Of a DNA stretch of 64,000 nt, positions 14,299 to 51,950 are shown in pieces (position 1 is the first letter of the stretch; each line of letters opens with the position of its first letter). The position numbers and the translations under genes are program-made. The stretch spans positions 124,001 through 188,000 of the IMG/VR virus record IMGVR_UViG_3300023174_005338, one strand, 5' to 3'. The notes below the pieces were generated by a model that was given only the letters and a program-made list of their open reading frames with translations, did no database searches and was not told the origin of the DNA.

Positions 14299-15144
14299 AT
14301 GAACTATCTTGTAATATATCCCGGCAGATTCCATCCGTTCCACCTAGGTCACAAGGCCAGCTATGATTGGTTGACCAATGAATTTGGTGAAAACTCAGTG
14401 TTTATAGCCAGCAGTGAAAAACAGGATCCTGAAACCAGTCCATTCAAATATGGCGACAAAGTGACCATGATGACCAAATTGGGTGTGCCCGCTGGGCGCA
14501 TCAAGAAAGTTACAAATCCTTATCAGGCCACGGAAATCACCTCCGCCCTGTCCGATGAAGAAAAGGCCAACACAGTGTTGGTATTTGCTGTCAGCGACAA
14601 AGATGCCCAGCGTTTCGATTATCGACCCAGAGCCGACGGTTCTCCGTCCTACCTACAACCCCTGCCCGAGAAAGAAAAAGCTATCAAGCCCATGACCCAG
14701 CATGGATATGTTGTGGTGACTCCCACAGTGAATTTCCGAGTACAAGGAGCAGATGCCAACAGCGCCAGCCAGATACGCAAACTTTATACAGCGGGCAACG
14801 ACAATGATCGAGATCAGATCATTGTGGATTTGTATGGCGCCGCTGACCCAGAACTACGGGACGTATTTGACAAGGCCCTGGGAGTCAACGAACCCCAGGA
14901 AGGCATAATTTACGGGCAAGAAGCGGTATTTGCTGGTGATAATCCTGTCAACGTCATGCGTGAAGAACGCCTGGCATGCCTGCGTGAAAATATGGAATAT
15001 CTACAACAGCGCATACAAAAGTTAAGAGATGGCCTGGACTACATTGATGAAAAATGGAGTCGTAAATACAAACGCAGTATCAACTGTGCCAGGCCACGAG
15101 GATTCAGCCAAAAGGCACACTGCGCCGGTCGCAAGAAAAAATAA
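14299..15144 (+). CDS. HxGH (cytidylyltransferase-like) nucleotidyltransferase with C-terminal basic two-Cys module
   Basis: PGRFHPFHLGH, SASQIR; ends IDE-KWSRKYKRSINC...HCAGRKKK. Confidence 0.75.
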   Translation: MNYLVIYPGRFHPFHLGHKASYDWLTNEFGENSVFIASSEKQDPETSPFKYGDKVTMMTKLGVPAGRIKKVTNPYQATEITSALSDEEKANTVLVFAVSDKDAQRFDYRPRADGSPSYLQPLPEKEKAIKPMTQHGYVVVTPTVNFRVQGADANSASQIRKLYTAGNDNDRDQIIVDLYGAADPELRDVFDKALGVNEPQEGIIYGQEAVFAGDNPVNVMREERLACLRENMEYLQQRIQKLRDGLDYIDEKWSRKYKRSINCARPRGFSQKAHCAGRKKK

Positions 15145-16114: not shown

Positions 16115-19100
16115 ATGAACATCCATGAGTTAGATTCCTACGATTTAGGCGATGCTGTCAAGTTCAATGATCAGTTAAATCCACGCCTCTGGGGCGCAGA
16201 CGAAAAAATGCGTCCCGAAGTGCGTGAACAACTATTAAAAATCGCTGATGATTTCCGTGAATTCCTGGGCATAGATGTCGAAGTCAAGGACATCACTGTT
16301 TCAGGCAGTAACGCAGCCTATACCTATACTCCACATTCAGACATAGATCTACATCTGGTAGTTGACCTTCCCAAGGCTGATGCAAGTGAAGTTTATCGCG
16401 AGCTGTTTGATGCCAAAAAGTATGCATATAATGACATGCATGACATCCAGATTGGTGGTTATGATGTGGAACTGTATGTGCAAGATGCCAACAAACAGCA
16501 TCACAGTCAAGGCATCTACAGCATAATGAACAATGATTGGGTTGCAGTGCCTCGACGTCGCAGACCCGATGTGGACGACATCAGTGTAAAAAGCAAGTTT
16601 GAAGATCTCGGCCATCGTATTGAAGCGGCGATCAAAACTGGTGACTACGACAAGATTTCAACCATGGCCGAAAAGGTCCGAGAATATCGTCAAGCCGGCC
16701 TGGATGCTCACGGTGAGTTTGGTCCTGAAAATTTAGCATTCAAGATACTAAGAACTCAAGGACTAATCAAACAATTATACGACGCTCGTAACGCGGCCAA
16801 AGACGAACTGCTGAGCCTGGATGAGCGCCGAAAGAAAAAGAAACGCAAATCAGTACGATACGGCTACGGTGCTTACTGGTATCCGGGCACGGCCTATGCA
16901 GGCCAAGATCATCCTGCTGGTACCGAAGGTGGCGATGGCGGTGGTGACGGAGGCGGCGAAAGCATTAGAGAGTCTGTGGAAACCGCTGACGAAGACATAC
17001 TTCGAGATTTTGTGGATTTTTGTATCAAAGAATTAAAGATCAAACACATGCCACAAGTCAAACTACGCCGTGATCCACAATGGCCTGCGGTACACCGAAC
17101 CTTTGGTCGCTACAATGATGAAAACAAAACACTAGAAGTGGCCTGGGGACAACGTCACATCATGGATGTGCTAAGAACCGTGGCGCATGAACTCACACAC
17201 AAGCATCAACACGAGCGTGAAGGTGATCGCATGGGCCCCGACGCTGGCGAAACCGGCAGCCCTTATGAAAATGAAGCCAATGCTCGAGCTGGTGTGCTCA
17301 TGCGTGACTATGGTCGACTACACCCCGAATACTTTACCGTGGGCCAAGCACAGGGTCTGTCTGGGGATTCTATGCAAGAAACAGCACCCATAGGATTTGT
17401 CATGCCCGGCATGACCACAGATCCTGTCAAGGCCTGGAAACGACAAGTGCGTGATTTGATCCTGCAATACCGCGAGGATCCTACCAGACTGGCCGCGTTG
17501 GCCAAAGAAAAAGGTCCTGGCAGTGCCGAAGCGGTGGCCTATGCCTATATCAGAAACCCCACGGCACGTATTCCTTTGCCACCGGGTGTTGAGGTCAAGG
17601 AAAGCGCTAGTGGTTATATTCCAACAAAAAAGCAGGCCAAGGACCCAAGATTTTCAATGGCACTCACAGTGGATATCAAACCCGGACAAGTGGGCAAAGA
17701 AGCCAACAAGTTGAAATTAAAAACAGATCGCCAAGGACATCCACAGATAGCCCGTGCCAATGGCTTGTTTGAGGATTTGATGTTGGAATATCAACAGTTC
17801 AAAGAAAAAAAACTGTTTGCACTGGCCGCCGAAGACTACAGTCCAGACAATCCACCGGGCCCAGAGTTCAAGCCAACCATGCCAGCCGGCACGCTACGAG
17901 TAGATGTAAGCGATGTGTATGACTGGTACAAATTGGGACAACATATCGCCAATATGAAAGGCCTAGGCCAGCACGACTTTGGCAAAGGACCACCCAGCAC
18001 CATAATCAGCTTTGGTGATGAAGATGAAGAACACAAATTTATTGGGGATCTGGAAGCTACAGGCCTGGATGTCACAGACATTGACCCTCGTGATCCTGTA
18101 AAACGTCCAGGCAAAACAATCAAGACCGATCCCACTTACAATGTAAATGAATTTGCTCCCACGCCAGATCGTGATGACAACGATTACGTTCCAGATCAGT
18201 TGTTGATTTTGGCCAATCGCTGGTGGAATGCCACAGACAAGCAACCACAGATTGAGCATGTGCTAAACAGCCTAGGCTGGAGTATAGCACAGGTAGAGTC
18301 CGAAGATGATGCTGTGCAACTACAGCACCGTGATGGCACTACATATTTTATCAGTGCCGATGAATTTGATCCTGACCTATATGAAGTCAGTGATCAACGC
18401 CTGCAACAATACTTGAGCCGCGCTGGCCAACAAGTGGATCGCCGGCAAGAACGCATGGCCCAGGCTCGCGAACGCTTGAACAAGGGTTATGAAATCTATG
18501 ACGCCGAAGATCCCACTCGCATAGTGCATAGATTTGAAGCTGACACTCCTCAAGAAGCTCGACGCTACTACGAACAGTACAATGACAACTATGATAGTGA
18601 CGTGGACTACAATCTAAGACTGCGCCGCGCCACAGGTTTGATGGAAAGTGAAGAAGAGCTAGACGAAGTAAAAATGAGTCCTGGAGCCTTGGAAAAGTTT
18701 GCTACGTCTAATGCCGCAAAAGGTATACGTGCTGGCTTTGAAGCCGAACTCATATTCCGCGACACACAGGGCAGCAGCGATGACTTAGATCCTGAACCCG
18801 ACTACGATGCTGATGAGCGTGCCTACAGCATACAGCAGGTCATAGATTTTTTCAGCAACGATGATTATGGTTATGGACTCAGCGATCGTGAGCAAATGCG
18901 ACTCACTGACAACCTAGACGAAACTTATATGACATGGCGCGACGAGCAGATGATCAGCGACTTCCGCAACGACGCCGAAGACTTGATCCGTGAAAAACTG
19001 CTTGATGAAACTCCCCTGAGCGAACGCATACACTTGTATCTCACTGACAGTGAACAAATGTCAGACAAAGAGGCCGACCGGATCATAGCCGCCGGCGTAG

Positions 19101-21670
19101 ACGCACCTAAATTTGACACCAGCAAAGACCAAGCGGCCTATGCGGCACAAAATCCCTACTATCAAGCATACCTGGACGCTGTTGATGCAGTCGAGCTAGA
19201 ACTGGATGAATCAGTGGAATACAGTGTGAGCCGTGAAGACGAATACTGGGACGAAGCCTTGGATGATTACCGCGACAACTATTCCGGCGATGATGACAGT
19301 TTCTTTAGTGATGTGGGCCTGCGCTGGATGAGCGACATTGCCAACGAGTTTGGCCTGGATTGGCCTGTTTGGAACATGGACAGCGACCGCAACAACGGTT
19401 CACGCAGTTGGGAAGACATTGGTAGCGAACTACAGGCAGTGGTAGACATGCCAGTTGTGGTCAGCGATAACTATCATTCAACCCGTCGTAGACCCGGTCA
19501 GTGGATCATAGAACCCGACGGCAGTTTACATCCCGACGATCAAAGCGAAGAAGCTGGCTTGGAAATAGTCAGCCCACCCATGCCCTTGCTCACAGCCATT
19601 GAAAAATTAAAACAAGTCACGGACTGGGCCAATGATCCCAACGGTGGCAACGCTTATACCAATGGTACCACTGGCTTGCACATGGGCGTGAGCCTGCCTC
19701 GGTTTACCTCCGAAGATGCTGATTCAGATGCTGGCATAGACTATGTGAAACTGATCCTGTTCATGGGCGACAAGTATGTGCAACAACAGTTTGGTCGCGA
19801 AGCCAACAACTTCTGTGCCAGTGCCTTGGGCAAACTGCAACAAAACATCAAGGGCAAGAAATCAGATCCCGCAGGTGTGATCGAACTTCTGCGTCATGGA
19901 CTCACAGAACTAGCCTATAAAGAACTGCAAAAAGGTGTGGGCACCAGCAAGTATACTTCAGCACACATACAGGATGGCTACATTGAATTTCGTAGTCCGG
20001 GTGGTGACTGGTTGGCCAAGAGTGACGAAGAGATAGGCATACTAGAAAACACTATGTTGCGTTTTGCTAGAGCCATGGCCATAGCCGGCGACCCCAGTGC
20101 TGATCGCAAAGAATATGCCAAGAAGCTGTACAAGTTGGTCACCCAAGACAATGAACAGTATGCGGACCAACTACGCTTGTTCTCGGAGTTTTCGGCCGGC
20201 ACCATCAACAAAGAACAGCTCAAAAAACAGTGGGCTGATAGTGTGCTACGCAAAGAAATACCCACCACTGGCCAAGAAGAATACGAAGTCTACGATGCAA
20301 ACAAGAGTCGTAGTCCCGAGGGTGTGATCGACACATTCTATGCTCGGGACTACAATGATGCCTATGAGCAGTACACTAAAAAATACGTCAACGACCCTCG
20401 CTGGACACAGACTGATATACGCCTAAAACAACCATGGTTTGATGTGCAAGATGCTACGGGCAAAAACATACTGACCATGCGTGCTCCTGACATTGACAAA
20501 GCCACGCAACGGGTCCAATACGAATATGGCGAGAAGTCCCAGGACTGGAAAGTATATCGCAGACCCGATGAGTCACCTGAGCCAGAAAAGAAACTGAGTC
20601 CACGTGCTCAAGTGGCCAAGCGTATCACAACCAAACCAAAAACTGCGACCCAATTCAACTATGACATAGTGGATCAACGCACTGTAGAGTTGCGGGTAGT
20701 TGACAGGTTCCGTGCCGAAACACCAGCAGAAGCAGAAAAGATTTACAGTCAATGGTTGCAGAGCAAAGACCTGCCCGATGACACTGCCAACTATGGCTAT
20801 CGTAAAAATGCGCAGGCCGCAGACAATCAAAGAGATTCAGCAGATATACAACGCAGACTGGGTGTGCAGGATGTGGACACGGATGTGGCACAGAATTTTG
20901 GTCAGTCACAAGATGCCACACAAAGATCGGGTTCCTGGAGCATATATGATGTTACCCTGGGGCGCGAAATCACTAGGATGGACAATGTTCCATGGCAACA
21001 GGCCAACGATCGTGCCAACGAACTGGAACAAAGCACTGGACATAACATGTCAGTAAGAGGGCTATCTGAATCCATTGATCCCGTCAGCGGTGCTGGTGCT
21101 GTGAGTCCGAGACAAGATCCAAAAAACACGGGCAAGAAAGCTGTTACTCCAGCAGAAAAGGTCTTTAAGAATCCGGTCAAGGGCCAGCCTTACCGCAATG
21201 CCATTGGACAAGCCATCACCCAAAAAGACTTGGAAAACATGACACAACAGATACAAGTGGCCAGGAAGTTAGGCGACAGTGTGATGGAGATGGAAGATAC
21301 TCCGCCCGAAGTGTTGCGAGCATTGGACCAGGCTGCACAAAAAAATGGCTACAAGAACTGGGCAGATGTCAAGGCCAATCCTCGCAGTAGCAGTGCTGTA
21401 ATGACCGTGGCCAAGCTGGCTAACACTATCATGAAGACCACAGGTCCACATCATGAAAAATTGTTTTACAAGAATAAGACAGATGTAGATGAAAACTTTG
21501 CTGACGGAAAAAACCCTGGACGTAAAGGATTGAGCCGCAGGGTAGGTATTCCTAAAAAAGCCACACTGGGACAACTAGAAAAAATAGCCAAAAGTTCTAC
21601 AGGCGAGCGTCGCAAAATGGCACAGTGGCAGTTGAACATGCGTCGTGGAAAGGCAAAGAAAAACAAATGA
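16115..21670 (+). CDS. Giant polyvalent protein (1851 aa): Pol-beta-type nucleotidyltransferase, HExxH metallopeptidase, amidoligase-like domain, repeats
   Basis: GSNA...SDIDL...DVELY; HELTH...ENEANARA; GFEAE...EPDGSL...LEIVSPP...GLHMG...IEFR; TAAATA 16104-16109. Confidence 0.75.
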   Translation: MNIHELDSYDLGDAVKFNDQLNPRLWGADEKMRPEVREQLLKIADDFREFLGIDVEVKDITVSGSNAAYTYTPHSDIDLHLVVDLPKADASEVYRELFDAKKYAYNDMHDIQIGGYDVELYVQDANKQHHSQGIYSIMNNDWVAVPRRRRPDVDDISVKSKFEDLGHRIEAAIKTGDYDKISTMAEKVREYRQAGLDAHGEFGPENLAFKILRTQGLIKQLYDARNAAKDELLSLDERRKKKKRKSVRYGYGAYWYPGTAYAGQDHPAGTEGGDGGGDGGGESIRESVETADEDILRDFVDFCIKELKIKHMPQVKLRRDPQWPAVHRTFGRYNDENKTLEVAWGQRHIMDVLRTVAHELTHKHQHEREGDRMGPDAGETGSPYENEANARAGVLMRDYGRLHPEYFTVGQAQGLSGDSMQETAPIGFVMPGMTTDPVKAWKRQVRDLILQYREDPTRLAALAKEKGPGSAEAVAYAYIRNPTARIPLPPGVEVKESASGYIPTKKQAKDPRFSMALTVDIKPGQVGKEANKLKLKTDRQGHPQIARANGLFEDLMLEYQQFKEKKLFALAAEDYSPDNPPGPEFKPTMPAGTLRVDVSDVYDWYKLGQHIANMKGLGQHDFGKGPPSTIISFGDEDEEHKFIGDLEATGLDVTDIDPRDPVKRPGKTIKTDPTYNVNEFAPTPDRDDNDYVPDQLLILANRWWNATDKQPQIEHVLNSLGWSIAQVESEDDAVQLQHRDGTTYFISADEFDPDLYEVSDQRLQQYLSRAGQQVDRRQERMAQARERLNKGYEIYDAEDPTRIVHRFEADTPQEARRYYEQYNDNYDSDVDYNLRLRRATGLMESEEELDEVKMSPGALEKFATSNAAKGIRAGFEAELIFRDTQGSSDDLDPEPDYDADERAYSIQQVIDFFSNDDYGYGLSDREQMRLTDNLDETYMTWRDEQMISDFRNDAEDLIREKLLDETPLSERIHLYLTDSEQMSDKEADRIIAAGVDAPKFDTSKDQAAYAAQNPYYQAYLDAVDAVELELDESVEYSVSREDEYWDEALDDYRDNYSGDDDSFFSDVGLRWMSDIANEFGLDWPVWNMDSDRNNGSRSWEDIGSELQAVVDMPVVVSDNYHSTRRRPGQWIIEPDGSLHPDDQSEEAGLEIVSPPMPLLTAIEKLKQVTDWANDPNGGNAYTNGTTGLHMGVSLPRFTSEDADSDAGIDYVKLILFMGDKYVQQQFGREANNFCASALGKLQQNIKGKKSDPAGVIELLRHGLTELAYKELQKGVGTSKYTSAHIQDGYIEFRSPGGDWLAKSDEEIGILENTMLRFARAMAIAGDPSADRKEYAKKLYKLVTQDNEQYADQLRLFSEFSAGTINKEQLKKQWADSVLRKEIPTTGQEEYEVYDANKSRSPEGVIDTFYARDYNDAYEQYTKKYVNDPRWTQTDIRLKQPWFDVQDATGKNILTMRAPDIDKATQRVQYEYGEKSQDWKVYRRPDESPEPEKKLSPRAQVAKRITTKPKTATQFNYDIVDQRTVELRVVDRFRAETPAEAEKIYSQWLQSKDLPDDTANYGYRKNAQAADNQRDSADIQRRLGVQDVDTDVAQNFGQSQDATQRSGSWSIYDVTLGREITRMDNVPWQQANDRANELEQSTGHNMSVRGLSESIDPVSGAGAVSPRQDPKNTGKKAVTPAEKVFKNPVKGQPYRNAIGQAITQKDLENMTQQIQVARKLGDSVMEMEDTPPEVLRALDQAAQKNGYKNWADVKANPRSSSAVMTVAKLANTIMKTTGPHHEKLFYKNKTDVDENFADGKNPGRKGLSRRVGIPKKATLGQLEKIAKSSTGERRKMAQWQLNMRRGKAKKNK

Positions 21671-22206
21671 TAATCAATGAAATAATCACCAAAAGTCCAA
21701 GCCGTTATGGTGGAGGAGCTCCTAGCATGTCGGCCCAGCGTATGACCGCTCCGAACACCACTACACCGCGTGGCTTTTCGGATCCAATTTTTGTCAAACG
21801 TGCCAAGCAAGAAAAATACAATCGAGAAAAACAGTTCAAAGCCCTGGCTACTGCCAAAGAGAAGTTTGATTTTTTATATGGCTTGGAAAAAGGAAAAAGC
21901 ACCAACCAGATCCGTATACAAGGACCTAGCAATTTGACATATCACATTCAGCAGTATAATCCAGTCACAGGAGATATAGTGTTGTTACTCAAAGGACTGC
22001 AGTCTGACGATACAATCAAGGGTAACACCAGCAATTTTGTTTACCAAGGGCGACAGGCATCTGGGGCCACTGGACCAAAAATCTATATTTTTATTCCACA
22101 AGATCTGACCACGATCTCGTCTGAGCCCAAGATCAAAAAAACCAACAGAGGCAGGCCCACCGGCCCTGTCAAGAAACAATACAAGTTTCCTCCTAATCCT
22201 TGGTGA
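21667..22206 (+). CDS. Hypothetical basic protein with CTS-like N-terminus
   Basis: MIINEII at ATGA overlap. Confidence 0.6.
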   Translation: MIINEIITKSPSRYGGGAPSMSAQRMTAPNTTTPRGFSDPIFVKRAKQEKYNREKQFKALATAKEKFDFLYGLEKGKSTNQIRIQGPSNLTYHIQQYNPVTGDIVLLLKGLQSDDTIKGNTSNFVYQGRQASGATGPKIYIFIPQDLTTISSEPKIKKTNRGRPTGPVKKQYKFPPNPW

Positions 22207-22211
22207 TATAA

Positions 22212-23396
22212 ATGAGAGCACAAGAGCTGGGATCCGGCAAGCTGGTCATATTTGACATTGATGACACCTTGGTCAACACCGACACTAGAGTCAATGTGGT
22301 GCAGGATGGCCGAGTCATCAAGCAGTTGAACAGCCACGATTTCACACACTACAAACTGGCACCCGGTGAAACATTTGACTTTGGAGCATTCAAGGATGCC
22401 AGAGAGTTCTTTACCAAGGCCCGACCTATTCCTGGCATGATCAAACAGCTAAAGCATGACATAGCCACAGGTAACAGAGTGATCATGCTCACAGCACGCA
22501 GTGACTTCAATGACCGTGATGTGTTCTTGGACACATTCCGCAGATTTGGCATAGACATGGACCGGGTCCACGTATATCGTGCTGGCAATCTTGCCATCAA
22601 AGCGGCCACCGAAGAAAAGAAAAAAATCATACTCAAGCATTTACTGGGCAAAGAGCACTTTGACAAGCTGATCATGTACGATGATTCAGTGCCCAACCTT
22701 AATGCTTTCTTGAGCTTGAAGCAGGATTATCCCTACAGCAAATTTTATGCCTGGCATGTGGACCCCAATGGACAAGCTAGTGAATATCATAGAACCGATG
22801 AAGGACAAGTCATGGAGATCGCACGTATACCTGTGGGAGATTTTGGGGACAAAGACAATCTCATACCCATGAGTGAACCACGCAGTTCACGACCTTTGCC
22901 CGGAGGATCAGGCCTGAGCTATCATGTCAAAAACATGCATAACAAAAAACAAATCACCATGTTTGACCAAGGGCAGTTGGTGGCCGAAATGGATCTCATA
23001 GACAGCATTTATCCGGCCAACACCTGGGAAGTCGAAGGCATAGTGGTAGATCCTGACTACCGAGGTCGTGCCTTGGGCTTGGCCTTGTACGGCATAGCAC
23101 TCAGTGAGCTCCGACTTACCTTGAAAGCGGGCCGCACACAGACCCGCCACGGCAGGGCCATGTGGCTCAAGCTGAATCAGATACCTGGAGTTGAAATACG
23201 TGGAGTAACTCGAGCACGACGCAACCAGTACAAGCCTAGACCCAGCAATGAAATCCTAGCACAAAATCAACAATATGTGTGGTACACTTTTGCTGTGGAA
23301 CCAGGTGCTCAAAGCATGCGCAGCGGTCAGCGCGGAGTGGCCTTGTACAGCTACGACACACCCAGTACCATGATAGCACAGTGGAGAGGCCAATGA
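22212..23396 (+). CDS. HAD-family phosphatase fused to GNAT-like domain, CTS-like N-terminus
   Basis: MRAQEL; IFDIDDTL, MLTARS, MYDDSVPNL; second domain VDPDYRGRALGLALY, QTRHGRAMW. Confidence 0.75.
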   Translation: MRAQELGSGKLVIFDIDDTLVNTDTRVNVVQDGRVIKQLNSHDFTHYKLAPGETFDFGAFKDAREFFTKARPIPGMIKQLKHDIATGNRVIMLTARSDFNDRDVFLDTFRRFGIDMDRVHVYRAGNLAIKAATEEKKKIILKHLLGKEHFDKLIMYDDSVPNLNAFLSLKQDYPYSKFYAWHVDPNGQASEYHRTDEGQVMEIARIPVGDFGDKDNLIPMSEPRSSRPLPGGSGLSYHVKNMHNKKQITMFDQGQLVAEMDLIDSIYPANTWEVEGIVVDPDYRGRALGLALYGIALSELRLTLKAGRTQTRHGRAMWLKLNQIPGVEIRGVTRARRNQYKPRPSNEILAQNQQYVWYTFAVEPGAQSMRSGQRGVALYSYDTPSTMIAQWRGQ

Positions 23397-23581
23397 AAGC
23401 CCGAGAAATATATCCCAAATACAAGTTGTGGACTGCCCCTGTGCGCATACAGCAACCCAACTACGTAGGCTACATTGATGTTACGGTCACAGCCGACAAT
23501 CAGCAGGATGCCCGCAGGCTCATGCGAGCCCAGTATGGGGTGGCCGACTGGCACATAGGTAGCGTAAAGGAAGTGCGATGA
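23393..23581 (+). CDS. Small protein (62 aa), CTS-like N-terminus
   Basis: MKAREI; ATGA overlaps. Confidence 0.65.
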   Translation: MKAREIYPKYKLWTAPVRIQQPNYVGYIDVTVTADNQQDARRLMRAQYGVADWHIGSVKEVR

Positions 23582-24315
23582 GCATCACAGTCACAGGCGG
23601 CACAGCCGTCATAAACGGTGACTACACTGTTCGCACCTTTGAATCATCGGGTACACTCACAGTCTCAGGAGGCACACTGGCCAATGTTCAATACTTGCTT
23701 GTAGCTGGTGGCGGTCAAGCTGCTTTCCCTACCAGCACCTATGTGGCCGGTGGTGGTGCAGGCGGAGCCATGACCGGTAATATCAATTTAAATTCAGGCA
23801 GTTATCCTGTGGTCATTGGTGCCATTGGAAACAACAGCACGTTCTTGAACATGACAGCCATTGGCGGCGGTCAGGGCGGATTTTACGGCAACGGCAGCAG
23901 TGGTGGATCTGGCGGTGGAGGTGGAACCCTGGGTACCACACATATAAATTTTGCAAGTTTTGTTGGCGGAAACGGCACACCCGGACAGGGTTACAACGGT
24001 GGAGCACCCTATGGCGGTGGATATCCACCATTTGGACCAGGTGGGGGCGGTGGCGCAGGCGGTCAAGGCGGCAAAGGCTCACCCGATGGAGTAGGTGGTG
24101 TAGGTGGGCTTGGTCTAGCCAGCAACATAACTGGCAATGTTGTCTATTATGCTGCAGGCGGCAGTGGAATAGGCCCCCAAGGAATTGGCAACAACAATCC
24201 TGGCTACAAGAACTATGGTGCTGGAGGTGGCTATGATATAGCCGATGGTCCCACCTACTATGATCGATTGCCCGCACAGCCCGGTGTGCTCATAATCAGA
24301 TACCCTACACCCTAG
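23578..24315 (+). CDS. Glycine-rich phage protein
   Basis: LLVAGGG...GGGAGG, GGSGGGGG, GVLIIRY pattern. Confidence 0.75.
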   Translation: MSITVTGGTAVINGDYTVRTFESSGTLTVSGGTLANVQYLLVAGGGQAAFPTSTYVAGGGAGGAMTGNINLNSGSYPVVIGAIGNNSTFLNMTAIGGGQGGFYGNGSSGGSGGGGGTLGTTHINFASFVGGNGTPGQGYNGGAPYGGGYPPFGPGGGGGAGGQGGKGSPDGVGGVGGLGLASNITGNVVYYAAGGSGIGPQGIGNNNPGYKNYGAGGGYDIADGPTYYDRLPAQPGVLIIRYPTP

Positions 24316-24339
24316 CAATCGGCACCAGCTAAATACCTT

Positions 24340-24627
24340 ATGAACCGGTATTTTGTACAAGTGCTAGCCGATGTAAACTGCGAATGGGAAGGACTGGATC
24401 CTGTGTATCGCGTGTATGTCAACGAAGAACTATTTGCTGAACGTAGCTGGCGCTGGACTGATGCATATCTGGAAGAAATGTTGCAGATCGAAGCAGAACC
24501 TGGAGAATACCGACTGCGCTGGGAACTGGTACAGCCTTGCCTGGCACGACTCACTGTCAGTAATGTGCGTGTGGATCAGGGTCCAGCAAGCGTAAAAAAC
24601 AATGAACTGCTAAGGATAACTGGATGA
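24340..24627 (+). CDS. Hypothetical protein (95 aa)
   Basis: TAAATA 24330-24335 upstream. Confidence 0.65.
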   Translation: MNRYFVQVLADVNCEWEGLDPVYRVYVNEELFAERSWRWTDAYLEEMLQIEAEPGEYRLRWELVQPCLARLTVSNVRVDQGPASVKNNELLRITG

Positions 24628-24812
24628 GAGCTAGTGAATTTATAGTAGAAACAACTGTAAGCGGCAGTATTGCTTCAGTGGCCATGCCCCTGGGCGGCAT
24701 GATCACAAGAAATGCTGGATCTTTCTTTTCTGGTAAATACTCTAATAGTGCGGATCCGTATCCTAATACACCTGCCTACATGAAAAAAGGAAAAAAGCCT
24801 CGTGCTCGCTGA
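24624..24812 (+). CDS. Small basic protein with CTS-like N-terminus (62 aa)
   Basis: MRASEFIVE then GSIASVAMPLG and a K/R-rich end. Confidence 0.65.
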   Translation: MRASEFIVETTVSGSIASVAMPLGGMITRNAGSFFSGKYSNSADPYPNTPAYMKKGKKPRAR

Positions 24813-25242
24813 TTTGTTAAAAGTTTATCTAGCTTCAACATTTGCTTATTATTTGAAAGCACACTATTTCCACTGGAACGTGGAAGGCCCAGATTTTGGC
24901 CAACTGCACAAGTTTTTCCAAAAAATCTACGAAGATGCGTTTGGAGCTGTAGATCCCATTGCCGAATACATAAGAACCACAGAAGAATATGCACCCGGAA
25001 GTTTTGAACGCTTCCAAGAACTCACACAGATACAGGGACAGACCAAGGTTCCCCGTGCCCGATTAATGTTAGAAGAATTGCTCGCAGACACACAGACCAT
25101 GAAGGACATGAGCAAGCAGTTGTTTGATGCTGCCACAGCCGAAGGTCGTGAAGATGTAGCCAATTTTGCTGCCGAGCGCCAAAGCGCACACGGCAAGTAC
25201 ATGTGGCAGATCCGGAGTTATCTGAAAGACGCAAGGGCATGA
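24802..25242 (+). CDS. dps: Dps/ferritin-like DNA-protection protein
   Basis: HYFHWNVEGPDF..LHKFF..IYE...D.IAEYIR; HGKYMW. Confidence 0.85.
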   Translation: MLADLLKVYLASTFAYYLKAHYFHWNVEGPDFGQLHKFFQKIYEDAFGAVDPIAEYIRTTEEYAPGSFERFQELTQIQGQTKVPRARLMLEELLADTQTMKDMSKQLFDAATAEGREDVANFAAERQSAHGKYMWQIRSYLKDARA

Positions 25243-25245
25243 ACC

Positions 25246-26037
25246 GTGGCACAAGACCATAACGACATCTATACCATTGTGGAAAAACTGGCCATCCTGG
25301 AAGGCCGTATCACTCCCACTGGTGTAAAAAAAGGTCTCAACCCACAACAGCGATCAGTGCCACAGATGCCGGCCCTGTTCAAGCCAAAGACACAAAAAAT
25401 ACTAGGCGGCAATCCCAATGCCAAGAATCCCATGTCAGGCTACATGGTAGGCAGTGATGAAAGTGTGGAACGTGAAGAGGCAGTGCTGGAAGCCGAAATG
25501 GCCGAAGATGTCCTTGAAAAAGTAAAAAAATCATTCAAAGATTTTATCCGACAAGCCGAAGAACAAATCAAAGACAGCGACATCAAAGAAAAGAAACAAG
25601 AAGACACAGATCTCAAAAGCCGAGATGCCAAGGATCGGGATCTCATAGTCAAGGTAGCCCCAGTCGCTGAAGATCCCACTGACAGTGAAGAAGACCAAGA
25701 AGAATGGTACGATGCCAATGGCCGTCCCGACGAATATGGTTGTTATGATGCCGGCGGCCACTATCATGCCGAACGTGAGTCAGACATGGATGCTGGATAC
25801 GATGCTTACAAAGAGCGCAATTGGACTGACGAATCAGCTCCAGTTAAAACTTTAACCAACGAGTGTGGCCTTTGGGAAATGCATGGCAACGAGCGTGATG
25901 GCTTTGAAATTCGTCGGGCTGGTCGTTGCTTACCTACCCGCTTTAAGAATTTAGACGAAGCCGAGATGGCTGTAGAAATGTTCGCACATCGCCGCAGAAT
26001 GGCCGACGAGTCACAAGATTACCTGGATGAAGAATAA
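25246..26037 (+). CDS. Acidic modular hypothetical protein
   Basis: GTG start; several hydrophobic-x-E junctions. Confidence 0.65.
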   Translation: MAQDHNDIYTIVEKLAILEGRITPTGVKKGLNPQQRSVPQMPALFKPKTQKILGGNPNAKNPMSGYMVGSDESVEREEAVLEAEMAEDVLEKVKKSFKDFIRQAEEQIKDSDIKEKKQEDTDLKSRDAKDRDLIVKVAPVAEDPTDSEEDQEEWYDANGRPDEYGCYDAGGHYHAERESDMDAGYDAYKERNWTDESAPVKTLTNECGLWEMHGNERDGFEIRRAGRCLPTRFKNLDEAEMAVEMFAHRRRMADESQDYLDEE

Positions 26038-29000
26038 TGTTAAGCCTAGATTTATTTAATTCACGATATGAGAAAAAATTGCACGAAGGTGCAGTAGATG
26101 ATGCAGAATATGCTCGCCTTAAAAAACTTGGCGAAAAGATTGATTACCTAAAACAAGCACGGGCCAAGACCACGGATGCCGAAATGCAACGTGCCATAGA
26201 TGGGCGTATCAAAGAATACAACGACGAACGCATGGAGATTCTCAGTGTGCGTGGCATGAAAGAAGCCGAACAACCCACACAACGTCCCAGCAAACAAGAT
26301 CCATTCGCTTATGTCAAGCCTGATCCCCAAGGAATTGGTGACACGCAAGATCCTAAACAAAAGATGGCGCAGTTGACACAACGGGCCAAGAAAGGTCACC
26401 TGGCCAATGTAGGTGCAGGCATCAAGGCTTTTATCAAAGGCGAACCCGAGCCCATGGACGAAGAACAACAAACAGTAAATCCTCGTGCTCTAGGTGTGGC
26501 CAATTTCCAACGCCTGGTCAAGGCCAACATGGGCAACATCCCCACTGTGAATTTGGAATTCATCCGACCCGAAGAAAACTTCAAATTAGATCAAAAAGGT
26601 CTAGATCTGATCAGTGATTATTACGATGGCCTGGAAAGTGACCAAGCCAAAAATTATTTCATCTATCGTGTGTTGCCCAGTGGTGACGAAACTAAAAAAA
26701 TCCTCAAACAACTAGGTTGGACCACACAACAAGTACAACCATCCTTGCCCGGCATACCCACACAGGGCGAACTGCCGTTGCAAGAAAAAAAAAAGTCTAA
26801 CAACGACGATCTAGAAGCCGGTGATGTCAAGGTAGCACGCGAATTACAAAAATTACGTGCGAGATATCCTGCTGTGCGTAGCGACATTGAAGCTGTGGCC
26901 AGTGCAGAAATAGACAGCACAGAACGCAGTCAACAACAACTGGCAGCCATACGTGGTGCCAATGACAAACAAGATGCCCTACTCAAACAGTTGGTTGATC
27001 TGGACAAACAACAAGGTCGCGAAATTGACGGCTTAGACAAAGAAAACAACAGTTTGGAACAACGCCTAGCACAGGTACAGGCCACCAATGATCGACTGCA
27101 ACAGACCATTGGTCAAATGACCGGCACCAAAAAAGCTGCCACTAAAACCAAAACAACTGCGCCACAAGGCTCTGCTGACGTGGCCCAGGGCGGCATAATT
27201 GATGTGGGTGCTCCAATGGCATCAATGCCCAATGCAACTACAGTGGCACCGGCGTCCAACACAACATCGACGACCAGCAATAAAGCTATGAAATACACGT
27301 CTCAACAAATACAAGGACTTGGTCAAGTAGCACCTGATATTAGAGGTAAAGCCGCTAATGATGGTGATCAACAAACAAAAAAAGTTTCAGGATCTGACAT
27401 CGAGGAACACGGTGGTGGCATAGGTCCCCGGCAACACTGGCAAGACCTCATGCAGGAAGGTCAACCACAAGAACTCATACATCGCTATCTGGCCATCAAC
27501 GCAGAAACCGATGTAGATGCTGTCAGAAAGGCCATACAGGCCATCAGTAGGGATCCTGCCTTGGGTGCAAACAGCAAAGCTCGACTACTGGGACAGATTG
27601 GCATGATAATCAAGCGGCATCGCTTGCCCATTGGTAGATCATACTATCAGTTCATGCAACAGTACATGGAAGAACAAAGTGTCACTGAAACAGTAGAAAA
27701 TGTTCGAGCAGGCATGGCTCGAATATATCGCCGCCTGGCACCTAAAATCGAACGCCATCGTGACAGCTTCCTTGCCGGCCAACTGTATGACGAGTTGGAA
27801 AACTATGCTGAACTGCATGGTGCCGAAGGCGAGTTCAAACGCATGATGGCCACGGCTAGGAATAGTGCGCACATGGAATATGACACCAATCCTGGTGGTT
27901 TCCAAAACTGGTTCTGGTTCCTGCCGTTTGAAGACAACGATGTGGATGAGGCTATCAGCAAAAAAGACTTGCTTGCTAAACTACAAAAGAATTTGCCAAA
28001 AGTCAATGATCCAAAAAACAAACACGCCAAACCAGTTAACTGGACCGGTGCTGGTAAAGATGATTATGGATACACAGGTTATCAAGGCCACGGTATGCCC
28101 ACTGATAAACAAGAACGAGCTCGTATCCGTGCTGATAAGAAAAAAGGTGTAGCGGAAGGTACCGATGATATCAAAAAGAAAATGTCCAAGTTGGAAGCAC
28201 TGGCTCTGGCGGCCAATCGTGCCGGTGATGATGCAAAATGCAAAATGTATCAGCAAAAGATCCAATCACTCAAACAAAAACTGTCGCAAAGCATGGCAGA
28301 AGGCTGGAGTGATCAGGGCAACCCCACCCCTTATTCAGTCTACATCGACGGACGTGAATGGCGTGCCTACAAGAGTGATGATCATGCCCGTGCTGTGGCA
28401 GAAAAAGTTCGGGCCAATTTAAAACGCCAAGGTCGCGATCAAACAGTTACCATAGCACCCAGCAAAACTAAAAAGGTACAGGAAGATTTTGGCATGCCTG
28501 GCACAACAATTCCACGCAAGAGTCTCATACAAGGCTACACAGTGTTTTGGAATCCTACTACACAAGTGGTCAGTGTCACACGTGGTGGCGACAGCGAAGA
28601 AGCGGCCATTGAACAAGCAAGAGTTGGCACACCTAGCATGAAGAATTTCCGCCAAGCGGCTGACAGATTGATTGACAGGATAGAAAGCGATTTAACAGAA
28701 AACTTAACCCGCGAACCGCGCACAGCTCGTGAACGTGATGAAATGATCGACAAGATACGCAGAATGATGACGCAGGATCGAAATCCGGCCAATCTACAGA
28801 TCATGAAGAAGGATATAGAAATCCTGCAGACCAGGTATCGTGATCTCAAGGAAGACAGCGACAGTGGTAAAGCAGTGGAAATGGCCATCATGCGCAGAAT
28901 GTTGGTGGCACACACTGATCTCATAGTAGAATTTGGTCTGGACAAGGTAGTCGATGCCATAGAAGAAGTGGCCTACAACGTGGGTGACACTGACGAGATT

Positions 29001-29162
29001 GGCAGCAGTGATGTGAGTGGTTGGGTCAATCAAGTCAAACAGATCCTGGGCGTGCCTGAAGATCTAGATGAGAAGTGGAGTGCCAAATACAAAAAGAGCA
29101 TTAATTGTAGTAACCCAAAAGGATTCTCACAAAAAGCTCATTGTGCGGGAAGGAAAAAATGA
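26037..29162 (+). CDS. Large modular protein (1041 aa) with coiled coil and C-terminal basic two-Cys module
   Basis: About 14 hydrophobic-x-E junctions; ends LDE-KWSAKYKKSINC...HCAGRKK. Confidence 0.7.
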   Translation: MLSLDLFNSRYEKKLHEGAVDDAEYARLKKLGEKIDYLKQARAKTTDAEMQRAIDGRIKEYNDERMEILSVRGMKEAEQPTQRPSKQDPFAYVKPDPQGIGDTQDPKQKMAQLTQRAKKGHLANVGAGIKAFIKGEPEPMDEEQQTVNPRALGVANFQRLVKANMGNIPTVNLEFIRPEENFKLDQKGLDLISDYYDGLESDQAKNYFIYRVLPSGDETKKILKQLGWTTQQVQPSLPGIPTQGELPLQEKKKSNNDDLEAGDVKVARELQKLRARYPAVRSDIEAVASAEIDSTERSQQQLAAIRGANDKQDALLKQLVDLDKQQGREIDGLDKENNSLEQRLAQVQATNDRLQQTIGQMTGTKKAATKTKTTAPQGSADVAQGGIIDVGAPMASMPNATTVAPASNTTSTTSNKAMKYTSQQIQGLGQVAPDIRGKAANDGDQQTKKVSGSDIEEHGGGIGPRQHWQDLMQEGQPQELIHRYLAINAETDVDAVRKAIQAISRDPALGANSKARLLGQIGMIIKRHRLPIGRSYYQFMQQYMEEQSVTETVENVRAGMARIYRRLAPKIERHRDSFLAGQLYDELENYAELHGAEGEFKRMMATARNSAHMEYDTNPGGFQNWFWFLPFEDNDVDEAISKKDLLAKLQKNLPKVNDPKNKHAKPVNWTGAGKDDYGYTGYQGHGMPTDKQERARIRADKKKGVAEGTDDIKKKMSKLEALALAANRAGDDAKCKMYQQKIQSLKQKLSQSMAEGWSDQGNPTPYSVYIDGREWRAYKSDDHARAVAEKVRANLKRQGRDQTVTIAPSKTKKVQEDFGMPGTTIPRKSLIQGYTVFWNPTTQVVSVTRGGDSEEAAIEQARVGTPSMKNFRQAADRLIDRIESDLTENLTREPRTARERDEMIDKIRRMMTQDRNPANLQIMKKDIEILQTRYRDLKEDSDSGKAVEMAIMRRMLVAHTDLIVEFGLDKVVDAIEEVAYNVGDTDEIGSSDVSGWVNQVKQILGVPEDLDEKWSAKYKKSINCSNPKGFSQKAHCAGRKK

Positions 29163-30229
29163 GATATCAAGAAATTCTTGAAGCCTGCTGGACAGGATAT
29201 CGGCAAGCCGGCATGAAGAAAAAGGGCGACCGTCAAGTGCCCAACTGTGTGCCCGTGGAAGAGGTCAAGATAGGTCCAGAGATCACTGGCAAGGACCTGT
29301 TGTTCAAGGCAGCTGCCATGGCCATGCGTGATGCGTCACACGAAGGCATCAGCTTGGACTATGAACAGGCCATCAAGCAAGCCAGCAAAATTTATGGCAT
29401 ACCTTACCAACCCAGTGAACTGCCCAAGTTACTGGCCCAGCGCCAAGAAATAGATCGTCAGTTGGCCCTGTTGAAACAAGGCAAACAAGTGGCCAAGGCT
29501 CGCAGACAAGAAAAACGAGCACCCACACCAGCCGGTGCCGACGAATACTGGAAGACACATGCTCTTCCTACCGATCGTATCAAGCCTGCAACCAAATCTC
29601 TTGAAGAAACAGAAGCAGAACTGGCCGAAGATTTGAAAAAGTGGTTCAAAGAAAAGTGGGTGCGTTTTGGCCCCGATGGTAAAATCCGTGGTGACTGTGC
29701 CCGAGGCAGCAGCAAAGAAGGCAAACCAAAATGCCTGCCACAAAGCAAGGCACATGCTCTAGGCAAGAAAGGCCGTGCGTCGGCCGCGGCCAAGAAGCGC
29801 AGAGAAGATCCCAATCCCGAACGCAGAGGCCCAGCAAAAAATGTGGCCACCAAAGTCAAAGAAAATCGCGGCGGCAACTATGAAGAACTTGGTCTTAGAA
29901 AATCATCGGCAGATAGGTTCGCTGTGTTAGACAGAACGCTGGATGCCGTTATAATGACCACTAACGATTTAAAAGCAGCCAAACAAGAAGCTATTGAGTG
30001 GGCTGACTATGACGATATCAGGACAGAAATCATTGATCAAGTCACAGGTAAAAAAATATTTGCTGTGGATGGCAATGCAGGTGCAATGAACTATCTTGAT
30101 GAAAAACAAGACGCCTGCTACCGCAAGGTAAAAAGTCGTTACAAGGTCTGGCCGTCAGCTTATGCAAGTGGAGCTTTGGTCCAGTGTCGTAAGAAAGGTG
30201 CCGCCAATTGGGGCAACAAGAAAAAATGA
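29159..30229 (+). CDS. Modular protein of basic two-Cys micro-domains, CTS-like N-terminus
   Basis: MRYQEILE-ACW..., LAE-DLKKWFKEKW..., LDE-KQDACY... Confidence 0.7.
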   Translation: MRYQEILEACWTGYRQAGMKKKGDRQVPNCVPVEEVKIGPEITGKDLLFKAAAMAMRDASHEGISLDYEQAIKQASKIYGIPYQPSELPKLLAQRQEIDRQLALLKQGKQVAKARRQEKRAPTPAGADEYWKTHALPTDRIKPATKSLEETEAELAEDLKKWFKEKWVRFGPDGKIRGDCARGSSKEGKPKCLPQSKAHALGKKGRASAAAKKRREDPNPERRGPAKNVATKVKENRGGNYEELGLRKSSADRFAVLDRTLDAVIMTTNDLKAAKQEAIEWADYDDIRTEIIDQVTGKKIFAVDGNAGAMNYLDEKQDACYRKVKSRYKVWPSAYASGALVQCRKKGAANWGNKKK

Positions 30230-30654
30230 GAGAGCTTATCACACTGGTAGAAGCAGCCGAGAAGAATTGTCCTAGAGCAACACACGACATAGCATTAAAT
30301 CTCAAGAACCGTCAGAAGGCCATTGAGCAATATCACTATGGACCTCCCAATCCTGGTGAAGCTGGCACCTACTGGAAAGATGCGGCTCGTCGTTGGCGGG
30401 TCACAGAAAAAACCATGAAGACCATGCGCTGTGGCAACTGCGCGGCCTTTGATGCCAGTGACAGTATGCGCAAGTGTATAGCCTCTGGCATAGAGTCCGG
30501 TGAGAAAAACATAGATGCAGCCGCCAGTATCAATTTGTCAGATCTCGGCTACTGCAACTTCCTGCATTTCAAATGTGCAGGAACTCGTTCTTGTTCGGCC
30601 TGGATCACAGGCGGTCCTATCACTGAAAAGGACAAAGGTCACAAGGCCAACTAA
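30226..30654 (+). CDS. Cys-rich protein, CTS-like N-terminus
   Basis: MRELITLVE; CGNC, GYC...FKC...RSC. Confidence 0.65.
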   Translation: MRELITLVEAAEKNCPRATHDIALNLKNRQKAIEQYHYGPPNPGEAGTYWKDAARRWRVTEKTMKTMRCGNCAAFDASDSMRKCIASGIESGEKNIDAAASINLSDLGYCNFLHFKCAGTRSCSAWITGGPITEKDKGHKAN

Positions 30655-31293
30655 ATGCGTATCAGTGATTTCCGTATAGAAAACCATGACAAGCTGGATC
30701 GCATATTAGTAGATCTGTGTGAAATGGTCATTGCGGGTCAACAACAAGATCCAGATCTCTATGGCATGGTAGCGGCAGCTGTGTTGGATCCTGACAACCG
30801 TCTAGTCATGGCACTAAATCATGCCCAAGGCCGCAAGGATGTGCATGGCGAGCGTGCAGCCATAGACAAGTATAGAAAGCAGTATGGTGAAATTCCTGAA
30901 GGCAGTATCATCGTCACTACCTGTAGTCCCTGCACTGAACCCATGCCCGAACGTATGGGCGCAAGTTGTAGAGATCTAATCAGTTCAACTCCGGTCCACA
31001 AGGTCTATGCTGGTTATAGAGATCCCAGCCAGGACACAGGCCCAGGCGATAAAACCTATCACTTACAAATAACACGCAACAAACGGATACAAGAATTGTG
31101 TCGACAATTTGCCAACACCTGGCTCAAAGATGAATTAAATGAACTCAGCTTCCTAGGCAGTCCATGCACCCGAGACTGCTCAGGACATAGAGCTGGTTAC
31201 TACTGGAGCCAGGCAAGAGGCGGAGCCAAGGTGCCCAACTCATGGAGCCAGAGTTTCAACAATGGTGCGGCATTGCACAAGGCAGGCAAATGA
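30655..31293 (+). CDS. Zinc-dependent (cytidine/dCMP-type) deaminase plus C-terminal Cys/His module
   Basis: HGE...TTCSPC (HxE / PCxxC variant); LNE-LSFLGSPCTRDCSGH. Confidence 0.7.
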   Translation: MRISDFRIENHDKLDRILVDLCEMVIAGQQQDPDLYGMVAAAVLDPDNRLVMALNHAQGRKDVHGERAAIDKYRKQYGEIPEGSIIVTTCSPCTEPMPERMGASCRDLISSTPVHKVYAGYRDPSQDTGPGDKTYHLQITRNKRIQELCRQFANTWLKDELNELSFLGSPCTRDCSGHRAGYYWSQARGGAKVPNSWSQSFNNGAALHKAGK

Positions 31294-45126: not shown

Positions 45127-45348
45127 ATGGGCAAGCGTGAATATCGTCCCAATCCACGTGCATTACAAACACTAGAAGAGTTGAGCAACTTCCTGGAGTT
45201 CTGTCGAGACTATGGCTACAGATTCCGCGAGGAGGATCTTTACAACTTTAAAGCCTATGCCTGGCAACAGTACAACAAGTTCAGCCAAGGCAAAAACGCC
45301 AAGAACATGTGGGTGGAAGATGCCCGCAGACTGGGACGCAACATATGA
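45127..45348 (+). CDS. Hypothetical protein (73 aa)
   Basis: SD AAGGA, coupled to next gene. Confidence 0.65.
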   Translation: MGKREYRPNPRALQTLEELSNFLEFCRDYGYRFREEDLYNFKAYAWQQYNKFSQGKNAKNMWVEDARRLGRNI

Positions 45349-46550: not shown

Positions 46551-47494
46551 GAGTAGTAGTCACCGGCGGAGCCGGATACATCGGTGGGCAAACCGTACTC
46601 AAACTGTTGGATGCTGGTCACAGTGTGTTTGCCATTGATCGTGTATGGGCTCCAGATCATCTTGAACATTCGGGTGCCAAGTGGTTGATTGGCGATTTTG
46701 CTGGCGAGGTGGCATTGCAAGCCATTGAAACCTTCCAACCCGATGCAATCATACACTGTGCTGGTACCAGCCTGGTAGGACCCAGCATGACCAATCCTGC
46801 GGAATACTATGACAACAACTTTGTTCGTACAAAAATTCTTTGCGATTGGTTGGTCCAAAAAAAAATAAAAACTAGACTGATCTTCTCCAGCAGTGCCGCA
46901 ACCTATGGCAATCCCATAATGACACCAGTGCAAGAAGTAGATCCCACCGAGCCTATCAGTCCATATGGTCAAAGCAAGCTCATGGTAGATTGGTTGTTGG
47001 CCAGCTACAAACATGCATACGACCTTGATTACGTGAGTTTTAGATATTTCAACGCCTGCGGCGCAGACAGTCAAGCTCGCCACGGACAAGCAGTTGGGGC
47101 CACTCATATCATTGCTCGTGTGCTAGAAGCGGTAAAAAACAAACAAGACTTTACCTTGTACGGCACTGACTATGCCACCGATGATGGCACATGTGTAAGA
47201 GATTACATCCACGTGGAGGATTTGGCCACTGCGCATGTCATGGCCATTGATCCTTCTATACCCAGCGACATTTATAATCTTGGAACCAACCGGGGCACAA
47301 GCAATCTTGAAGTAATTCAGGCCGCGGCAAAAATCACCCAACAAGATGTGGGCGTGTTGCACGGTCCCAAGCGTGCAGGCGATCCTGCTGTATTGACCGC
47401 AGACTGCGGCAAATTCATTGCAGTCAGTGCCTGGCAACCAAAATTTGATCTCAACGACATGATAGCTCATGCCTGGGCCTGGTACACCAGATGA
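46547..47494 (+). CDS. galE: UDP-glucose 4-epimerase
   Basis: GGAGYIG, FSSSAATYG, YGQSK, RYFNACG, DGTCVRDYIHV. Confidence 0.9.
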   Translation: MRVVVTGGAGYIGGQTVLKLLDAGHSVFAIDRVWAPDHLEHSGAKWLIGDFAGEVALQAIETFQPDAIIHCAGTSLVGPSMTNPAEYYDNNFVRTKILCDWLVQKKIKTRLIFSSSAATYGNPIMTPVQEVDPTEPISPYGQSKLMVDWLLASYKHAYDLDYVSFRYFNACGADSQARHGQAVGATHIIARVLEAVKNKQDFTLYGTDYATDDGTCVRDYIHVEDLATAHVMAIDPSIPSDIYNLGTNRGTSNLEVIQAAAKITQQDVGVLHGPKRAGDPAVLTADCGKFIAVSAWQPKFDLNDMIAHAWAWYTR

Positions 47495-48126: not shown

Positions 48127-48138
48127 ATCCATTTGATC

Positions 48139-51949: not shown

Positions 51950-51950
51950 C

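Follow-up and report, generated by a model that had tools for sequence, protein, structure and literature searches.

Cassette polyproteins with prohead-protease-type motifs at their junctions in an uncultured T4-superfamily jumbo phage

Introduction

In bacteriophage T4 the internal proteins IPI-III and Alt are each encoded by one gene that carries a capsid-targeting sequence (CTS), and each receives a single N-terminal cut, with an additional C-terminal cut in Alt. The T4 protease gp21 cleaves on the C-terminal side of Glu when P3 is Leu or Ile; processing depends on CTS residues 8 and 10 and is blocked by an Asp at CTS position 10 (P1) (PMC9026906). Here we describe a computational analysis of positions 124,001 to 188,000 of the IMG/VR virus record IMGVR_UViG_3300023174_005338 (a 64,000-nucleotide stretch, hereafter the window), which is part of an uncultured freshwater jumbo phage of the T4 superfamily with a genome of about 337 kilobases (kb). 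The subject is three of its genes, A, B and C, whose products are strings of cassettes punctuated by the tripeptide [ILVM]-x-E (phi-x-E). Together with at least the open reading frames ORF 14299 and ORF 22212 these genes encode cassette polyproteins, and their cassettes have been gained, lost and reordered at phi-x-E, between genes and between phages. We consider it probable that the chains are targeted to the capsid and cut at their junctions by the prohead protease, and that the cassettes, each bringing its own site, shuffle freely.

The resemblance to the T4 internal proteins extends to a leader of about 8-10 residues ending in phi-x-E (MRYQEILE/A in protein C and MRAQEFLAE/N in relatives, compared with MKTYQEFIAE/A in T4; the slash marks the bond after Glu), to a Glu at P1 with a hydrophobic P3, to a gp21-family protease in related genomes, and to a hypervariable cargo. 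In contrast to T4, 5-15 cassettes are present per polypeptide, the sites are internal, and cassettes have moved between genes and between phage groups; cleavage itself is something that we infer.

Polyvalent phage proteins (Iyer, Burroughs, Anand, de Souza and Aravind 2017; PMC5512222) are similar in combining many unrelated enzymatic domains with a zincin-like metallopeptidase (MPTase), in their mosaicism, and in that they have been proposed to be delivered along with the DNA and to have their domains set free proteolytically. Like these proteins, with their 2-15 unrelated domains, A contains a nucleotidyltransferase, a zincin, an Amidoligase_2 domain and further folded blocks, and ORF 22212 contains HAD and GNAT domains. 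In the polyvalent proteins the embedded MPTase is the proposed processor and no conserved junction motif is described, whereas here phi-x-E punctuates even chains in which no peptidase is recognised, and many cassettes are tiny basic peptides; the word amidoligase is absent from the searched text of that paper. Giant phages of the phiKZ type (201phi2-1, phiKZ, SPN3US gp245) have a gp21-related protease whose targets are many head proteins, cleaved behind Glu at several sites, with propeptides cut into several pieces. Their motif is S/A/G-x-E, which is not enriched in the present chains, and in SPN3US the cuts, besides self-cleavage of the protease, remove N-terminal propeptides and do not separate retained cassettes (PMC10052503). 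The Dar anti-restriction enzymes of phage P1 are likewise packaged in the head, and DdrB is processed before or during packaging; unlike the present chains they are separate proteins with hierarchical incorporation, for which cassette chains and phi-x-E punctuation have not been reported.

The components of such a system (CTS/gp21 internal proteins, polyvalent proteins and phiKZ-like multi-site processing) are thus already known, and the suggestion in an earlier reading of this DNA, made from the letters alone (the original prediction), that the system is undescribed applies only to its form: no description of shuffled polyproteins punctuated by phi-x-E, or of these modules, was found in the searchable literature.

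Results

Proteins A, B and C are strings of cassettes

The three genes are as described in the original prediction and encode 1851, 1041 and 356 amino acids. Gene A and its parts are as follows.

16115..21670, plus strand: gene A, 1851 amino acids, about 13 cassettes
16115..16129, plus strand: leader MNIHE, with I-x-E at residues 3-5
16130..16825, plus strand: cassette 1, a nucleotidyltransferase with an aminoglycoside-adenylyltransferase-like fold, ending at LDE237
16826..16972, plus strand: basic, Gly-rich linker segment, ending at IRE286
16973..17380, plus strand: minimal zincin-like metallopeptidase with an HELTH motif, ending at MQE422
17381..17602, plus strand: optional helical cassette between MQE422 and VKE496
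17603..18646, plus strand: four small shuffled cassettes, ending at FKE564, VNE679, LYE757 and LME844
18647..21070, plus strand: spacer ending at LDE851 and amidoligase (Amidoligase_2) cassette ending at LSE1652
21071..21493, plus strand: two small cassettes, ending at VME1725 and VDE1793
21494..21667, plus strand: C-terminal basic module NFADGK..., 58 amino acids, isoelectric point 11.9

The nucleotidyltransferase, the zincin and the amidoligase form an invariant core of A with variable small cassettes in between. Its leader, MNI-x-E, is present in 106 of 120 homologues; across aligned homologues IHE5 is kept in 96% with 11 different residues at P2, and IRE286 is 91% conserved with nine. Stand-alone phage homologues of the nucleotidyltransferase terminate at residue 236, at the end of cassette 1. 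Confident blocks in the AlphaFold model correspond to the zincin (residues 290-408, flanked by IRE286 and MQE422), to an alpha/beta block at 690-756 flanked by VNE679 and LYE757, and to a helical block at 435-493 with a predicted local distance difference test score (pLDDT) of about 94 (93-95), which is missing or swapped in many homologues. A Foldseek search with the model returned only weak nucleotidyltransferase and minimal-zincin matches.

The C-terminal NFADGK module was also seen in dozens of unrelated, mostly short viral contigs (loci L020-L068), where it lies behind wholly different proteins, among them a HAD phosphatase and a DGNHR-motif protein, and is far more conserved than the sequence around it. 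It may act as a targeting tag, as a peptide that binds DNA or as an effector.

Genes B and C and the two further polyprotein genes are the following.

26037..29162, plus strand: gene B, 1041 amino acids, about 14 segments
29073..29159, plus strand: C-terminal basic Cys module of B, WSAKYKKSINC..., 29 amino acids
29159..30229, plus strand: gene C, 356 amino acids from an ATG that overlaps the stop codon of B as ATGA
14299..15144, plus strand: ORF 14299, a cytidylyltransferase-like enzyme that ends in IDE followed by the basic Cys module of B
22212..23396, plus strand: ORF 22212, a HAD phosphatase, VME, and a GNAT-like domain

Protein B begins with a 17-residue leader ending at LHE17, and L-x-E/G is kept in 96 of 120 homologues. 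Domain searches found no recognisable domain in B, and Foldseek gave no significant match to its model. Its supported junctions are MDE142, IEE457, MQE474, VTE551, VDE638, VAE707, MAE755, VQE816, LTE888, LKE939 and LDE1012. The 29-residue Cys module at its C-terminus also forms the C-terminus of ORF 14299, which belongs to the same system although it lies beyond the region originally singled out, and of cyanophage proteins. Protein C has a CTS-like leader, MRYQEILE/A, and then five modules split by VEE35, LEE150/LAE157, VKE235 and LDE315, of which the last is DUF5872-like; all six of its phi-x-E tripeptides lie at module edges.

The module repertoire therefore comprises enzymes (nucleotidyltransferase, minimal zincin, amidoligase, HAD phosphatase, GNAT and cytidylyltransferase), small domains, and many very basic Cys-containing peptides of 30-80 residues. 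Among the small modules Pfam recognises only DUF5872 and DUF6321.

Phi-x-E is enriched at module boundaries and not overall

The original prediction placed module boundaries at phi-x-E, with the caution that Glu is common in these proteins and that the boundaries had been judged by eye. The caution was well founded: compared with composition shuffles, the raw number of phi-x-E tripeptides is not enriched in A (27 against 25.7), B (21 against 14.3) or C (6 against 4.6). Because the motif occurs once per 50-70 residues, boundaries chosen by eye are no proof, and because whole-protein enrichment is absent the claim rests on position and not on frequency. Boundaries were set in three motif-independent ways, by homology breakpoints, by conserved-module anchors and by AlphaFold blocks.

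More than 1400 relatives of A (1147-2661 amino acids) and more than 550 of B are detectable, and they share common blocks at 50-85% identity and differ by the insertion, loss and reordering of blocks. When A is compared with 119 relatives, the ends of BLAST matches cluster at residues 415-417, 493, 564, 679, 755, 843, 940, 1638, 1725 and 1790; most of these clusters lie no more than six residues (0-6) from a phi-x-E, with those at 564 and 1638 being 6-14 residues away. Breakpoints are found at or near MQE422, VKE496, VNE679 (exact), LYE757, LME844, LDE936, VME1725 (exact) and VDE1793. One junction that had been assigned to LFE553 fits better at FKE564; homologues read x-K-E there, the P3 residue being A, V, S or L. 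The unrelated cassettes that alternate at the junctions of A end variously in LAE, IAE, VNE, VDE, VAE, VKE, LFE, LYE, MNE, MTE, IQE, IDE and VVE.

All-versus-all comparisons show the last aligned residue to be Glu at 33% of breakpoints, compared with about 7% of all residues in these proteins, and the residue two positions before it to be I, L, V or M at 34%. With 120 homologues each of A and B compared, a phi-x-E lies within two residues on either side of 400 of the 1277 breakpoints in family A (101 expected) and 454 of the 1463 in family B (115 expected), an approximately fourfold excess in each. The control motifs phi-x-D, phi-x-K, phi-x-Q, phi-x-R, [SAG]-x-E and [DKRQN]-x-E occur at 0.5-1.2 times expectation, phi-x-D at 0.5-0.9 and [SAG]-x-E at 0.9-1.2. 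Breakpoints were then grouped into distinct cassette tails to strip phylogenetic redundancy, and a tail was kept if it had five or more variants and was followed by two or more different partners; phi-x-E ends 21 of these 38 tails, compared with 0-2 for the controls (binomial P = 7e-14 against motif density). This set replaced an unfiltered count over all 284 raw breakpoint clusters, which was noisy (44 against 17-31 for controls).

The phiKZ-type motif [SAG]-x-E was considered as a candidate in its own right, having an excess across A as a whole (z = 2.7); it was unconfirmed at the junctions, ending none of the 38 tails, and was rejected.

Conserved modules provide a second set of boundaries. 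The NFADGK module, at 78-98% identity (60% in one match), follows 37 unrelated upstream sequences in many contigs, and the residue preceding it is Glu in all 37, with I, L, V or M at P3 in 32 and P2 free. Four further small basic modules, likewise seen behind unrelated upstream sequences, have the motif at a fixed spacing: the DUF5872 type (42/43), the WFKEKWV type (42/42), the CWxGY type (27/29) and the WSxKYK type (6/6).

The third set comes from AlphaFold2 models of A (residues 1-940) and B, both of which show compact blocks with low-confidence linkers between them. Over the two models, 24 of 37 phi-x-E tripeptides fall in low-pLDDT linkers where 15.6 are expected (P = 0.0045), and 15 of 34 edges of confident blocks have one within six residues where 7.5 are expected (P = 0.003). 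The controls are depleted or neutral, the hydrophobic-containing ones being depleted in linkers. The original prediction had looked to AlphaFold domain boundaries for an enrichment of phi-x-E and to homologues for gain and loss of modules at these sites, and both are observed, with cassettes inserted, lost and reordered at the motif.

That the pattern is due to chance, a common tripeptide having been matched to boundaries drawn by eye, is highly improbable: the density of the motif would favor it, but objectively set boundaries are strongly and motif-specifically enriched while controls remain flat, and the breakpoint, tail, anchor and AlphaFold tests lead us to reject it. That the genes have a cassette architecture, and that the motif is specific and conserved in position, is in this respect established.

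Across homologues P3 and P1 of the junction motifs are retained, whereas many different residues occur at P2. At P1' the junction tripeptides favor Gly, Ser or Ala, and at P2 they favor Ala, as scaffold sites do; those located elsewhere in the chains have no such preference. Codons vary from junction to junction, and there is therefore no evident common DNA sequence to guide recombination. These features bear on the idea that the chains remain intact as multidomain (polyvalent) proteins, with phi-x-E serving as a linker or helix-capping convention or arising as a by-product of recombination. Polyvalent phage proteins with 2-15 domains are indeed known, some of them, such as the virion RNA polymerase of N4, packaged uncut (PMC5512222); the total frequency of the motif is at the level of chance, and LDE237 lies inside a predicted helix. 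We nonetheless find this explanation doubtful, as the enrichment is particular to Glu, does not extend to Asp, and places a hydrophobic P3 in otherwise polar linkers, the motif persists over more than 20 unrelated cassettes whatever the residue at P2, it also terminates N-terminal leaders of 5-17 residues, the differing junction codons offer recombination no evident shared DNA guide, and in this lineage the same motif is found on the propeptide of the major capsid protein (MCP) and on the scaffold, both known protease substrates.

Prohead protease, head proteins and leaders in related phages

The junction motif fits the T4 gp21 rule, with Glu at P1, a hydrophobic P3 and no enrichment of Asp. 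The closest isolate with virion proteomics, Agrobacterium phage Atu_ph07, encodes a homologue of T4 gp21 with conserved His and Ser motifs, together with a gp22-like scaffold and a gp23-like capsid protein, and homologues of its gp21 at 52-58% identity are common in IMG/VR, in contigs of 317-355 kb. In these relatives the head genes are arranged in the order large protein, portal, acidic core protein, gp21, scaffold and MCP. The MCP has four conserved phi-x-E tripeptides within its first approximately 42 residues, the last of which (Y/H-L-x-E) directly precedes the conserved mature-type core; four are also present in T4 gp23, where the last is the known site LTE/AEIGG. The scaffold contains 6.9-8.0 phi-x-E per 100 residues, compared with 7.8 in T4 gp22, and the protease itself starts MALYLRE/N. 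The acidic core protein starts with the T4-CTS-like MNKFEQLIE/Y, has 10-12 phi-x-E (counted in loci L161 and L190), and is probably this lineage's counterpart of the T4 core proteins gp67/gp68. Given the gp21 homologues and the shared motif in MCP, scaffold and core proteins, the prohead protease of the lineage very probably has T4-type specificity.

This acidic core protein, of about 270-300 residues, is encoded between the portal and gp21 genes at L161:9160-9987, L190:9075-9986 and L350:9118-9936.

Leaders resembling the T4 CTS are found in C and its relatives. That of C, MRYQEILE/A, resembles MKTYQEFIAE/A of T4 IPII and IPIII; relatives with a different first module start MRAEEFISE/D, MRSDEFISE/N or MRAQEFLAE/N, and where the same first module lies inside a chain an ordinary phi-x-E junction takes the place of the leader. 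The original prediction proposed that each chain is packaged through one CTS; in C-type chains the CTS-like leader may play this part, and the leaders of A and B are conserved but dissimilar to the T4 CTS.

Several relatives connect the cassettes with virions or with gp21. Gp196 of Atu_ph07, a 500-residue homologue of the amidoligase cassette of A, is encoded two genes from the portal gene, and its 13-residue N-terminal leader ends LTE/LKMNSS, which aligns with the A junction LDE851/VKMSPG. This protein is virion-associated by mass spectrometry (14 peptides, 30% coverage; PMC6102473 supplement). The 317-kb contig IMGVR_UViG_3300037882_001770 has a head module with gp21 plus C-like chains, one a 487-residue string of small modules and a second of 193 residues with a CTS-like leader, a DGNHR-motif domain, MTE and a basic tail; the DGNHR-motif domain may be ParB-like. 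The 209-kb contig IMGVR_UViG_3300035703_000008 encodes gp21 together with a HAD cassette that shares 87% identity with that of ORF 22212, followed by VKE and the NFADGK module rather than by VME and GNAT. Chains in T4-like cyanophages consist almost entirely of the same small modules with phi-x-E in between, and, as these phages are in culture, are an experimental entry point. In these relatives the protease and the shared head-protein motif are established, as are CTS-like leaders and the virion association of one cassette homologue.

The cyanophage chains are 430-700 residues long, with Cys-containing basic modules of DUF5872-like, DUF6321, WSxKYK, WFxxKW and CWxGY types; examples are S-CAM9 gp114 (L218:1658-3757) and an RB11-B 'structural protein' (L217:2171-3454), both beside virion structural genes.

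Cleavage at the junctions by some other enzyme has also to be weighed, either the zincin of A acting in cis or in trans or a further Glu-specific peptidase of phage or host, perhaps in the cytoplasm or after injection. In its favor, the HExxH domain of the zincin weakly matches a jannalysin-like fold (prob 0.98, E = 0.08) and, again weakly, Peptidase_M78, autoprocessing by the MPTase was proposed by Iyer et al. (PMC5512222), and the genes lie outside the head module. No protease domain was detectable in B or C, in contrast to the zincin-like domain in A, and B, C, ORF 14299 and the cyanophage chains are punctuated alike without a recognisable protease. The specificity and the leaders, moreover, match the gp21/CTS system, and head proteins of the lineage bear the same motif. 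This alternative appears unlikely. To our knowledge no cleavage specificity has been determined for zincins of this kind.

The original prediction named gp21-type cutting as the mechanism. The specificity of the motif agrees with it, as does the presence of gp21 and of motif-bearing head proteins in relatives. No gp21-family protease gene is present within the 64-kb window, and that of the source genome would lie outside it.

Source phage and genomic context

Protein A is encoded in identical form on the 337-kb contig ENA ERZ2680843 NODE_36, which equals IMGVR_UViG_3300023174_005338. The clade to which the phage belongs is very abundant, with contigs of up to about 320-370 kb. A near-identity search with protein A against isolated phages found no near-identical isolate. 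The closest matches to the family-B DNA polymerase of the window are those of Sinorhizobium phage Phosso (50%), Agrobacterium phage Atu_ph07 (46%) and the Rak2/121Q group (42%). The window also encodes a ClpB-like ATPase and an isocitrate lyase and has genes for sugar modification and further auxiliary genes, and within it the characteristic modules are confined to 14.3-30.2 kb.

Two further ORFs adjoin genes B and C.

25246..26037, plus strand: ORF 25246, an acidic, phi-x-E-rich protein of 263 amino acids, overlapping the start of B (TAATG)
30226..30654, plus strand: ORF 30226, 142 amino acids, with an ATGA overlap with C and the CTS-like start MRELITLVE/A

ORF 30655 begins right after the stop codon of ORF 30226. 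The TAATG and ATGA overlaps and the abutting ORF 30655 suggest that ORF 25246, B, C, ORF 30226 and ORF 30655 (window positions 25246-31293) form one translationally coupled operon.

Several other features of the window are worth recording. A 245-residue, extremely Gly-rich protein (phrog_2295) is encoded at 23578-24315, between polyprotein genes, and a full-length ClpB/ClpA-type double AAA+ ATPase at 10349-12625, a few kb 5' of them; several Clp-family genes are also present in Atu_ph07. The pair at 4987-6282/2122-3093 comprises an isocitrate lyase (family match E = 6e-106) and a TctC-like tricarboxylate-binding protein, unusual auxiliary metabolic genes in a phage. At 49508-51949 lies an apparently intact gene for an 813-residue protein with FG-GAP repeats and a weak, sub-threshold match to the mid/N-terminal region of the TcdB toxin (E = 4.5e-4). 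A long series of glycosyltransferase, DegT/aminotransferase and related genes at 45309-63382 suggests a sugar-modification pathway, with DNA or a surface glycan as its target.

Discussion

The positional specificity of phi-x-E in the A, B and C families, together with the protease and head proteins of their relatives, makes it probable that these are capsid-targeted polyproteins cut at their junctions by the prohead protease. A short N-terminal leader, T4-CTS-like in the C type, would carry the chain into the assembling prohead core, where a gp21-type prohead protease, cutting after the Glu of phi-x-E, would sever it at the junctions. The released proteins and peptides would remain in the head with the DNA and presumably be injected along with it. 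Recombination could add, drop and reorder cassettes with processing retained, because every cassette has its own site, and this would explain the mosaic families. For the products of A, B and C themselves, packaging, cleavage, injection and an effector function are what we infer.

A number of observations weigh against this reading. Packaging and cutting of the chains are predictions from sequence comparison, and the gp21-type protease is one known from related genomes. The polyprotein genes are surrounded by metabolic and replication genes (ClpB-like, cytidylyltransferase, radical SAM, family-B DNA polymerase and similar) rather than by head genes, of which there are none in the 64-kb window; unlike polyvalent-protein genes they do not lie beside virion or packaging genes, and none of 145 head loci has an adjoining homologue of A, B or C. 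The leaders of A (5 residues) and B (17 residues), although conserved, are unlike the T4 CTS, and A has its own zincin, a possible contributor to cutting. Of the 38 robust breakpoints 17 have no phi-x-E, the clear junction FKE564 has a non-canonical P3, and the overall confidence of the AlphaFold models is low, with a mean pLDDT of 58 for A and 56 for B.

A broader proposal, for which we put the chances at about even, is that T4-superfamily phages, both the 320-370-kb freshwater jumbo clade and the marine cyanomyoviruses, share a mobile pool of capsid-cargo cassettes, each with a prohead-protease site, strung behind a targeting leader, packaged once and cut into injected enzymes and basic peptides. 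This would represent a previously undescribed plug-and-play form of delivery with a logic like that of polymorphic toxins.

Should cutting of the junctions take place in the prohead, large phages would diversify their injected cargo by a simple rule, under which a cassette need only end in phi-x-E to be inserted into a targeted chain. Cultured cyanophages allow a direct test of this rule. For thousands of giant 'hypothetical proteins' without annotation, in metagenomic jumbo phages and in cyanophages, mature products would become predictable; among these are small basic peptides that are very conserved (DUF5872, DUF6321 and others without a name). The use of the T4 CTS as a packaging tool could be extended to multi-cargo constructs, and the idea of polyvalent proteins would be tied to a concrete processing enzyme.

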